Positions 28,901-31,900 of a stretch of DNA of 64,000 bases are shown here, piece after piece. Positions within the stretch are counted from its first letter, which is position 1. Each line of letters begins with the position of its first letter. Position numbers and translations under genes: made by a program. The DNA is taken from positions 9,858,001 to 9,922,000 of the forward strand of contig NC_135769.1 of assembly GCF_052425735.1 (NCBI RefSeq). The letters run 5' to 3'. The notes below the pieces were generated by a model. It did not search any database. It saw only the letters and a program-made list of their open reading frames with translations, and had not been told where the DNA came from. This stretch comes from Oculina patagonica. Lineage: Eukaryota.

Positions 28901-31900
28901 ACATAGGCCTGCCAGTGGGCGCAATAAAACATGAAGGTTGCCATGAATGACATGAAAAACATCCAGACAGGCTGTGTGCCGAGCTCTAACGCAACACTGA
29001 CAGCTAAGACCATTATCACCATGGAAACAGAGTCACAACCATGGTCGACTAATTCTCCAAGTGGGGATGCACTTTTTGTACGTCGTGCTTGTTTACCATC
29101 AACAGCATCAAGGGATTGGTACACAAACAATCCAATTGCATTCAATATGAAGGCCCACCCTGGTGCCTATAAAAATAATTTATTAATATATAAGTAAGGG
29201 ACTGTAGCATGGCTGAGTTTAGTTTACTTTATTAAGTTTGCAAAATACTTGTTATGAAACTTACACGTAATGTCAACAAAGAAATTACTTAGAACTATGG
29301 ATCTAAATGAAAACATAACAAATAGATCTTCCAGGAATTGTAATTAAAATCATCCTCAGTCATTTATTTGTCATGACTGAGGATGATTCTAAACTAGAAT
29401 TCTAAACTAGAATCGAAACACTGTTCATCCGCATTTATTTGTTCTTCACATGTAATACATGTTTGACATGTTCGTTGCAGGAAACTCCTGTTCACATGTA
29501 AGTTCATATGGGATTCACTCACGCGCCGTTCCCATCTGTGGCTCTGTAGCTCAGATGGTAGCTTAGCAGTGGTCATGCAACCCGAAGGTCGTGGGTTCGA
29601 GTCCCACCTGATCATGAGCCACTGAATTTTTTTCAGTAGCCAGGATTCACAGTGTCTCATTTCATTTATTTGTAATTAAAAGTTACAAACAAATTTACCT
29701 TCAGCCTTAAAGTTTATCAAAAATCAATATTCCAATCTATTTTTGTCTTTAATGAATTTGTCCATCTGTACCCTTTTTGGTATTTCAAAACAACAAAGGA
29801 TACACAACTTATAAATATAGCATTTTATGTGTCCTTGATCATGATGTTATATTGAGAAATTTTGGGGAGACTTCAGCCAATAGCATTGCTAGAAACCCCA
29901 ACTGAAAAGCAGCTTAATATTTGATGAGAACGTATCACGCGATACACATCAAAACTGTTTAACTCCATAGGGCAAACAAAACTCACTAACTCCCTTGGGC
30001 GACAACAGTTGTACATGTATCTTGGACTTGCACGGGATCAGCTCAAAGCCATGGTATGAACCGTGTTTGGTATGAACGTGAAGAAATTTGAAGTTGTGGA
30101 CAAAAGCTAAACATTTATTCATTGTTCAACAGTTAAAATACCAAGATTATTTGTACTTGCAGAAATTAAATTTGACTCAAAGAAGGATACTAATGTCTTC
30201 TGAATGCAAATTCGATTAAGCTCAAAGCACCAGGCAGTGTTAACACTTTTAGTGAATAAATTCATGTTGTTTAATTTCAGCCAAAGAAAAATTTAGTGGT
30301 GAATACAGACAGCAAAGCATTTATTTTCAGTTGGGAAGTACAGTATGTGACCCTAAATCCGGACAGCCCTTGTTTCGGACACTTACGGTTCATCATACAT
30401 TTTTCCGATAGGAAACAAAGATTTTAATAAAACCGAACCTTTTCAAAGCTTTCTTGATCTGTTTGCTGTCTTAACCTTGCTCGAAGGCTTTCCTGCTGGC
30501 GGTGAAGTTGAGAATTTCAAGTCTACGTGAAGGTAGGTGAAGTTTGTTTTCGTGATGTTTATTTGTTCATGGCGCCTCAAATTAACTGGTTTTCTTTACA
30601 TTCCTGTATATTCAAACTGAGGGCTAAAGAAGGTAATTTTTGGTAGAATTGAAGCACCACAACGGGCGAGGCCATGGCCAACACAAAGGCGCGCGCCACG
30701 CCAATTGATGTATAGGAAATATTCTTTCGACTACAGTGCTACAGTATTACTGTAGTGCAAAAAAATTTGATTGACCACTTGAGTTTCCGTTCAAAGTAAC
30801 GAATTAAAATTTTCTAAGTAATTTTCCTGACTATGTCCTTGGCCCGGACACTGACGGCAAACAAATAACTTTATAACTTCAAACTTTTGAAGGTGGCAAG
30901 CTAAATAATACTGAAAGAAAAAAGAGTATAACAAAATTTACACCTTTCGTTTGAGTTCTAAGGCATAATAAACTTCATTTTACAACAGTAAAACTAAAAT
31001 GAGAAGTTTTAATTCAAACTTTGCAAATCACGCTTATCAGTGTGATAAGCGCTATAGTTTACATGTATATTCACTGTACATGTACTTCTTGATGAGATGA
31101 AAATAGCTCTCTTCCCTAAAATTTTTATTTCATTATTCTGAATTTCACTAAAACATATTAAAAATATGCAAGAAGCTTCTATAGATTAGTTTTTGAACAA
31201 TTGTTGCGTAAATTTTGCGTGCTGTCCGGACCAAGGACCCGCTGTCCGGACCAAGGGCCATCAAACCGAACCACTGTTTTCGATATTAAGAGTAATCGAG
31301 TACACGTAAGCACAGAAGCTGTTGCCTTTTCACATGTTAGCTGGATGGCACGGTAACTTACAGGACAAATTTTAGCTCTCTGCTCTTCTTCTAAGCTGAG
31401 AAATACATGTTCGTGTCTTTTTCGTCCGGACCAAGGCCCGGGGGGTTCCCCTATAATGGCCTATACGGGGAGGCTCCGCCCGAAAGGGGTACGACTTTTT
31501 TCAGGCTTCAGGTATATAAAAGGGTATGGAGTTCACAAGTTTTGGTATATGAAAGGGTATGAAAATCCGTCATTTAGGTTTTTAAAAGGGCCTTTAATTA
31601 AAATATTTCGAACAGACGCACTTTATGGCTGTATTATTTTAATTTATTAAGCGCTACATGAAAATGACGAGAAAAGGTCTTGTTCTGAGTCACTCTATGC
31701 CATGTCTTTTAGGTATATGAAAGGGGTACCTTTTTTCTGTAAAAGGTATACGAAAGGGGTACAATTTCTGTCAAAATGGTATATAAAATGGTAAGGGGTA
31801 AAAGCTTGGGGCGGAGCTTCTCCATATAAAACTTTTTTGAGTGCCCCCCCCCCCCCCCCCCCCGGGACCAAGGGCCACATACTGTATAACAAAACACTTA

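Follow-up and report, generated by a model that had tools for sequence, protein, structure and literature searches.

At positions 29350-29673 of a 64,000-nt stretch of Oculina patagonica DNA (NC_135769.1; hereafter the window, in whose coordinates all positions are given) lies an insert that carries pieces of a hammerhead ribozyme motif together with a tRNA-like unit. What kind of element is this, how was it inserted, and does the ribozyme take part in its propagation? A first-pass annotation of the window had proposed a hybrid of a short interspersed nuclear element (SINE) and a retrozyme. We find that a mobile family uniting a hammerhead motif with a tRNA-like unit does exist. Its type I reading of the hammerhead does not hold, and neither a promoter role for the tRNA unit nor mobilisation by a sequence at 36430-37130 is supported. 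Our preferred interpretation, to which we assign a probability of about 0.6, is a low-copy, non-autonomous retroelement with Penelope-type insertion, the RNA of which would be cleaved by its hammerhead and copied from a circular or multimeric template.

The window copy and its family

The insert is one member of a non-coding repeat family with a unit of 280 nt. It is a dead element copy, ~92% identical to the majority sequence of the family, and is laid out as listed here (End A and End B are the two places where arms of the family stop, as described in the next section).

29338-29349 (unstranded): left target-site duplication, TTGTAATTAAAA; the same 12 nt occur again at 29670-29681
29350-29363 (minus strand): short inverted 5' arm, the reverse complement of 29373-29386, which corresponds to unit positions 14-27 (ATGACTGAGGATGA)
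29360-29673 (plus strand): main arm, one full unit (302 nt) and 12 nt of the next unit, stopping at End A (...CATTTATTTGT)
29373-29430 (plus strand): 3' part of a predicted type III hammerhead, from sequence reading, junction fold and descriptor test
29373-29376, 29377-29383 and 29384 (plus strand): helix I 3' strand ATGA, core CTGAGGA and an extra T
29385-29391 and 29408-29414 (plus strand): helix II, GATTCTA/TAGAATC, 7 bp, with a 13-nt duplication in loop 2
29415-29417, 29418-29424 and 29427-29430 (plus strand): GAA, helix III 3' strand ACACTGT and outer pairing ATCC
29433-29443 (plus strand): internal third copy of CATTTATTTGT, from the sequence
29540-29621 (plus strand): tRNA-Ala(UGC)-like unit with A box and B box (Rfam tRNA, 23.4 bits here; family alignment)
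29620-29639 (plus strand): palindromic hairpin CACTGAA-T7-TCAGTG, with the T7 run at 29627-29633
29643-29673 (plus strand): 5' part of the predicted type III hammerhead, from sequence reading, junction fold and descriptor test
29643-29646, 29649-29655 and 29656 (plus strand): outer pairing GGAT, helix III 5' strand ACAGTGT and C17
29656/29657 (plus strand): predicted cleavage site, followed by helix I 5' strand TCAT (29657-29660) and loop 1, which ends at the insert end
29670-29681 (unstranded): right target-site duplication, TTGTAATTAAAA, by sequence match to the left copy

The 14-nt inverted start, the 302-nt period, the hammerhead core with its 7-bp stem, the tRNA-like unit and the T7 run, all reported in the first-pass annotation, were located in the sequence. 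The target-site duplication is also present, and its length, formerly given as 9 bp, is better stated as 8-12 bp because the first 4 nt of TTGTAATTAAAA may belong to the element end. The inverted and main arms share 4 nt (TCAT, 29360-29363) at their joint, and the outer end of the inverted arm is of the End B type. The period follows from the occurrence of CATTTATTTGT at both 29361-29371 and 29663-29673. The unit of this copy measures 302 rather than 280 nt because of the 13-nt duplication in loop 2 together with insertions of 3 nt in the D arm and 6 nt in the acceptor stem of the tRNA-like unit. The GAAAC of the hammerhead core lies at 29415-29419. Since the hammerhead spans the junction between units, the single unit of the window copy holds it as two separated pieces and contains no intact ribozyme.

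We searched the genome of the source coral (529 Mb), using the 280-nt majority sequence as a coordinate frame only. The window insert gave 88 matches genome-wide, to which a second query and a 98-nt terminal query added few more. After removal of two segmental duplicates, ~51 insertions of the family were counted, 77-100% identical to the majority sequence and dispersed over at least 14 chromosomes. The earlier claim of a repeat element is thus borne out by the number of insertions, the consensus layout and the tandem junctions, and the layout of the window copy is not a chance arrangement because it recurs in ~50 insertions across the genome. The unit has a GC content of 44% and lacks a long terminal repeat (LTR), primer-binding site (PBS) or polypurine tract (PPT). 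The sequence pattern of the 3' half of the ribozyme is rare, with only 30 matches in the genome at three or fewer mismatches.

Two further insertions of the family lie in the window, ~80 bp apart and 24 kb from the copy at 29350.

53770-53889 (unstranded): second family insertion, two short opposite arms joined at the palindromic hairpin, minus to 53835 and plus from 53836
~53970-54126 (unstranded): third, older family insertion, of a subfamily with GTA at the cleavage site; flanks CTCTTT(T)AAA

The second is flanked by an 11-bp duplication, AGACTAAACAA (53759-69 and 53890-900); in the third, the minus arm stops at End A and the plus arm at End B. The presence of three of ~50 insertions within one 64-kb window may reflect a local target preference. 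Elsewhere in the genome, the flanks are identical within each of two pairs of loci, L003/L010 (C3, 18 kb apart) and L076/L077 (C8, 48 kb apart); these are segmental duplications carrying a copy rather than independent insertions.

Target-primed insertion with Penelope-type scars

Chaining of matches resolved the ~51 insertions into 82 arms, the 3' ends of which fall largely at two places. A set of 33 arms ends at unit positions 5-19 (median 12), in the 3' half of loop 1 (End A), and another 33 end at unit positions 27-60 (median 38), in loop 2 and the 3' strand of helix II (End B), the distance between the two ends being ~26 nt. About 30 insertions (~60%) consist of two opposite arms, and within each such pair the arms stop at different ends, one at A, one at B. 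The 5' ends are concentrated in one zone: 29 of the 82 arm starts lie inside the 30 nt around the palindromic hairpin (11% expected, P = 3e-9), which is the hot spot of the family for both 5' ends and inversion junctions. Otherwise the 5' ends are scattered, as in 5' truncation. Target-site duplications of 7-12 bp are readable at ~20 loci.

Arms stop at the hairpin on their first or second pass, and several continue 20-55 nt past it, which indicates that the hairpin is a site of stalling or joining and not the 5' end of the RNA. An RNA 5' end placed just after the T-run was rejected on these grounds, given the arms that run 20-55 nt beyond and the many short arms that stop there on the first pass.

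Published Penelope-like insertions are characterized by 5' truncation, partial tandems (pseudo-LTRs), an adjacent inverted and 5'-truncated copy, target-site duplications of variable length, and a tail of 30-40 bp at one end (PMC8557442). The scars of the coral family agree with these features, and the ~26-nt offset between End A and End B would correspond to the tail. Truncations, partial tandems, inverted arms, variable duplications and tail-like ends were all seen; the first-pass annotation had named partial tandems and 5' inversions. Its proposal of a tandem or circular RNA template also gained support: 24 insertions exceed one unit and contain head-to-tail junctions (maximum 2.4 units), so the template was multimeric or circular. 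We conclude that insertion was target-primed, left Penelope-type scars and used a template longer than one unit. That the 280-nt family is a Penelope-type non-autonomous element is, on this evidence, very probable.

In this process, staggered nicks at the target left the duplications of 8-12 bp, and cDNA synthesis began inside the RNA, either at End A (hammerhead loop 1) or at End B (~26 nt further on). In about half of the insertions it continued beyond a single unit. In ~60% of insertions a second, opposite arm, primed from the other site, was joined to the first, mostly at the palindromic hairpin around the T-run. For this hot spot we propose that, as the cDNAs from the two nicked strands would both be antisense, they could anneal to each other only at a palindrome, which the hairpin would supply; in the window copy the joint lies instead at the shared TCAT. 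We further propose that, before insertion, hammerheads in multimeric RNA would cut after GUC (GUA in older subfamilies) to release 280-nt monomers, which a host ligase of the RtcB type would circularise, by analogy with animal retrozymes (PMC7229834), and the circle or the multimer would be the template for reverse transcription. Priming inside the ribozyme loops would occur because a circle offers no 3' end.

A circular RNA stage in the life cycle of the family is a reasonable suggestion, to which we give somewhat less than an even chance. Public reads were consulted as Logan contigs, most of them from runs of unknown kind. Head-to-tail joints were found in the contigs of three runs of unknown kind; such joints also occur in the DNA, and the contigs speak neither for nor against expression, cleavage or circles.

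The hammerhead, the tRNA-like cassette and competing explanations

Copies that retain an intact unit junction read ...GUGUC/UCAU...AUGA-CUGAGGA-U-(helix II)-GAA-ACACUGU (slash, predicted cleavage), with the core, U16.1 and H17 all present. The corresponding type III fold has a helix III of 7 bp (ACAGUGU/ACACUGU) extended by an outer pairing of 4 bp (GGAU/AUCC), a 4-bp helix I (UCAU/AUGA) closed by 14 nt, and a 7-bp helix II whose loop is AAC; helices I and II are closed by loops and helix III is open. A9 and G10.1 are separated by one extra U. The minimum-energy fold of the intact junction is this type III three-way junction, and a descriptor search on the circularised unit recovers a type III motif with stems of 4, 7 and 7 bp. 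Among 50,000 dinucleotide shuffles, only 2 contain any type III motif with stems of at least 4 bp. The circularly folded monomer reaches -90.2 kcal/mol (z = -5.0 against shuffles), and retrozyme RNAs have been reported as highly self-paired (PMC7229834). We therefore regard the complete type III hammerhead across the unit junction as real as a motif, as far as its sequence can tell.

A type I register was tried and rejected: downstream of GAAAC, no U16.1-H17 precedes a strand able to pair with what lies before CUGA. The minimal type I Penelope hammerhead of the first-pass annotation is consequently given up, as no type I register closes helix I and the type III fold fits instead. The core is kept throughout the family, as expected in that annotation, and covariation, which it asked for in stem II, is not significant over the helices. 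Between subfamilies, H17 is either C or A and helix I and loop 1 vary, with the core, helix II and helix III identical. A single compensatory change was identified: in an old subfamily (L074, L080), pair 1.1:2.1 is G-C in place of U-A; L073 and L083 carry the matching halves of this change.

The two strands of helix III (ACAGTGT and ACACTGT) are each followed by TCAT and, a few nt later, by CATTTATTTGT (29649-29673 and 29418-29443). These repeated blocks correspond to unit positions 268-280 plus 1-12 and to positions 46-69. The repetition suggests an old internal duplication, which may be the origin of the type III topology.

We predict that the hammerhead of the family is catalytically active, at odds only slightly better than even. 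The strongest competing explanation, itself rather improbable in our view, accepts a mobile and Penelope-dependent element and holds that the hammerhead-like segment does not cleave. It would be a relic or a recognition module from a Penelope pseudo-LTR, and the templates would be uncleaved transcripts of tandem master copies, either multimers or linear read-through products, in place of circles. Much of what speaks for this alternative belongs to a series of results that weigh against our preferred interpretation. No Rfam hammerhead model matches the window, a tandem copy or the 106-nt intact junction at the gathering score or at E <= 10, and a genome-wide search with RF00008 gave nothing above the cut-off; the covariance-model check suggested in the first-pass annotation returned the tRNA and no hammerhead. 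This miss probably reflects the length of loop 1 (14 nt) and of helix II (7 bp), together with the extra base. Covariation over 19 junction copies is not above that of shuffles though 87.7% of cells are paired, a weak signal attributable to junction copies that are too alike. No copy starts or ends at the predicted cleavage site, and helix I, with only 4 bp and a 14-nt loop, faces a competing pairing. All parts of the unit decay at an equal rate (region-wise divergence, in all copies and in old copies); as no region is better kept, copies within the genome are uninformative on constraint. In the sole RNA-Seq run, a coral metatranscriptome, coverage lies mainly over the tRNA part, and the 5' part of the ribozyme is uncovered. 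The search for a partner was also negative. The 98-nt terminal region matches family members only (genome search at close similarity), there is no similarity of the family to window positions 35000-38000 or to 12 loci with other hammerheads, and a close-similarity search found no autonomous Penelope element sharing the 3' region of the family.

A segment without cleavage would also be in keeping with published work, in which Penelope hammerheads are poor cleavers in vitro and Naiad elements spread without them (PMC4209133, PMC8557442). It is harder to reconcile with a motif that is complete, has its three helices in register and is very unlikely to arise by chance (2 of 50,000 shuffles). Moreover, the core and helices II and III are constant while differences fall at positions that hammerheads tolerate (H17, helix I and loop 1), and the monomer is unusually structured.

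The tRNA-like unit occupies unit positions 163-236. In the window copy it scores 23.4 bits with the Rfam tRNA model and is missed by ARAGORN, the low score being explained by two small insertions (3 nt in the D arm and 6 nt in the 3' strand of the acceptor stem). Younger copies reach 54 bits (gathering score 29), and ARAGORN calls them as tRNA-Ala(UGC). The A box and the B box of the unit are intact, its anticodon stem degenerate. In every copy a T-run of 5 to more than 10 T starts 6 nt downstream of the unit, in the loop of the palindromic hairpin (CACTGAA/TTCAGTG). The T-run of the window copy (29627-29633) reads as a predicted terminator of RNA polymerase III (Pol III). A Pol III transcript should thus stop at ~90 nt at this run and cannot cover the whole unit, and the cassette would yield only this short RNA. 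No insertion starts at the 5' end of the tRNA unit, and among the 82 arms the 5' ends do not cluster at unit position 163. The tRNA part is a self-contained cassette, near-intact in young copies. The first-pass annotation was right about the existence of a tRNA-like Pol III cassette (54 bits and tRNA-Ala calls in other copies), and a promoter role for the element as a whole is not supported. With its own terminator, the embedded tRNA gene may be a passenger, or it may offer tRNA-processing or ligase enzymes a handle.

The intact A and B boxes are also what an ordinary tRNA-derived SINE would show, and the internal Pol III promoter expected of such elements is present. We consider it very improbable that the family is a SINE moved by a long interspersed nuclear element (LINE), with the ribozyme-like or tRNA part nested in the window copy only. 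All full copies contain both the hammerhead and the tRNA unit, arranged alike. The tRNA part is therefore no nested SINE confined to the window copy, and the refuting condition that the first-pass annotation had set on this point does not arise. Nor does the tRNA part head the element: it is internal, with the T-run directly after it, and 5' ends are not clustered at its start. The copies lack an A-rich, poly(A), microsatellite or LINE-like tail, and LINEs do not typically leave tandem plus inverted structures of this kind. A further alternative is a satellite, a tandem repeat that recombination or segmental duplication would have spread at the DNA level. It has in its favor the duplicates L003/L010 and L076/L077 with their identical flanks, and is contradicted by ~50 dispersed loci with their own duplications of 7-12 bp, fixed 3' ends and variable 5' ends.

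Neighbouring sequences and comparison with known systems

The first-pass annotation attributed mobilisation of the insert to a family represented at 36430-37130. We could not substantiate this link. The open reading frames (ORFs) at 36402-36922 have no meaningful Pfam match, the remnant at 36430-37130 gave a weak Atlas lead to GIY-YIG/HTH_animal, and this region is without similarity to the 280-nt family. Short broken frames at 36431-36922 (plus strand) read ...VVYKIPCNDCN... and ...LESWHT..., and look like the GIY-YIG end of a Penelope-like ORF.

Other hammerheads are present in the genome. RF00163 matches 73 other sites (type I), none of them in the 280-nt family. At least 70 canonical type I hammerheads, among them those of L033-L042 (position 1501-1545 of each locus), score up to 51.6 bits and have a 1-bp helix III and the palindromic loop AGCT. 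They are often paired, 140-560 nt apart, in direct or inverted orientation. As judged by comparison of their sequences, these loci are other retrozyme or Penelope families, unrelated in sequence to the 280-nt family.

Three other features of the window were recorded. Perfect 29-nt terminal inverted repeats at 35654-36125 surround ~414 nt holding 18-nt tandem repeats (AATAAGCGCCCC-n-TTCC), and this looks like a miniature inverted-repeat transposable element or a fold-back element. An inverted repeat at 40008-40182, 81 nt long and 88% complementary with its arms separated by 13 nt, is a potential long hairpin or fold-back element. An open frame of 292 amino acids at 38117-38995 (minus strand) encodes a seven-transmembrane receptor domain of the rhodopsin family (PF00001, E = 3.8e-24).

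No published description of the 280-nt family was found in the literature, to which the comparison was confined (Repbase and Dfam lay outside it). Closest in general form are the animal non-LTR retrozymes, the published hosts of which include the coral Acropora millepora (Cervera and de la Pena 2020; PMC7229834). Shared with these are short, non-coding, low-GC units (150-450 nt), a hammerhead in each unit, head-to-tail copies, variable target-site duplications, a proposed dependence on Penelope-like elements, and a highly self-paired monomer. A type I hammerhead is a criterion of that class (PMC7229834; preprint 10.64898/2026.07.22.740005), whereas the 280-nt family has a type III hammerhead and a tRNA-like gene. 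Its copies are mostly of 1.1-1.3 units (maximum 2.4), compared with the long arrays of animal non-LTR retrozymes. The literature on animal non-LTR and plant LTR retrozymes mentions no tRNA-like module.

Plant LTR retrozymes are GC-rich elements of 600-1000 nt that have LTRs, a PBS and a PPT and rely on the machinery of Ty3/gypsy elements (Cervera et al. 2016, PMC4918200). The 280-nt family resembles them in its type III hammerhead, its non-autonomous nature and its proposed route through circular RNA, and differs in the absence of LTRs, PBS, PPT and Ty3/gypsy features.

The details of the ribozyme core point to Penelope elements. In the minimal hammerheads of Penelope pseudo-LTRs, A9 and G10.1 are separated by an extra base, helix II is long (6-7 bp) and G10.1 pairs with C11.1 (PMC4209133). 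All three hallmarks (Cervera and de la Pena 2014) are found in the 280-nt family, and within the repeated terminal region of a Penelope-type insertion. A viroid hammerhead tolerates U at the extra-base position, with trans-cleavage raised (PMC3705267). Penelope hammerheads are of type I, all but lack helix III and work as dimers (PMC4209133). In contrast, the coral family has a helix III of 7+4 bp and a loop-closed helix I, and it encodes no reverse transcriptase.

The combination with a tRNA-derived module has a counterpart in schistosomes. In Sm-alpha the hammerhead is type I, the tRNA-like part stands at the head of the element and there are tens of thousands of copies; compared by description only, the coral family differs in its internal tRNA unit with its own terminator, its type III fold and its ~50 insertions. 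Sm-alpha and Sj-alpha are ribozyme-bearing, tRNA-derived, SINE-like elements (Ferbeyre et al. 1998; Laha et al. 2000; cited in PMC2770079). The likeness consists in a tRNA-derived module of Pol III type joined to a hammerhead in a short non-autonomous repeat, the module being called by tRNA finders.

Thus, the 280-nt family is related in kind to animal retrozymes and to Sm-alpha-like SINEs. A more specific proposal, which we offer tentatively and think unlikely, is a new type of coral retrozyme: a 280-nt circle with a type III hammerhead remodelled from the minimal Penelope one, primed in its two exposed loops by a Penelope reverse transcriptase, and seeding a complete Pol III tRNA-like gene, transcribed on its own, with each insertion. 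As the family is small and young, every insertion is readable, and it provides clean maps of the start sites of a Penelope-type reverse transcriptase (two, in or beside the ribozyme loops). The map of arm joining at the palindrome bears directly on Penelope integration, a poorly understood mechanism. A Penelope-type element with a type III fold in a cnidarian would blur the division between type I hammerheads in animals and type III in plants, and the Penelope-like details of the core within a type III fold suggest that ribozyme topologies interconvert within one element lineage.

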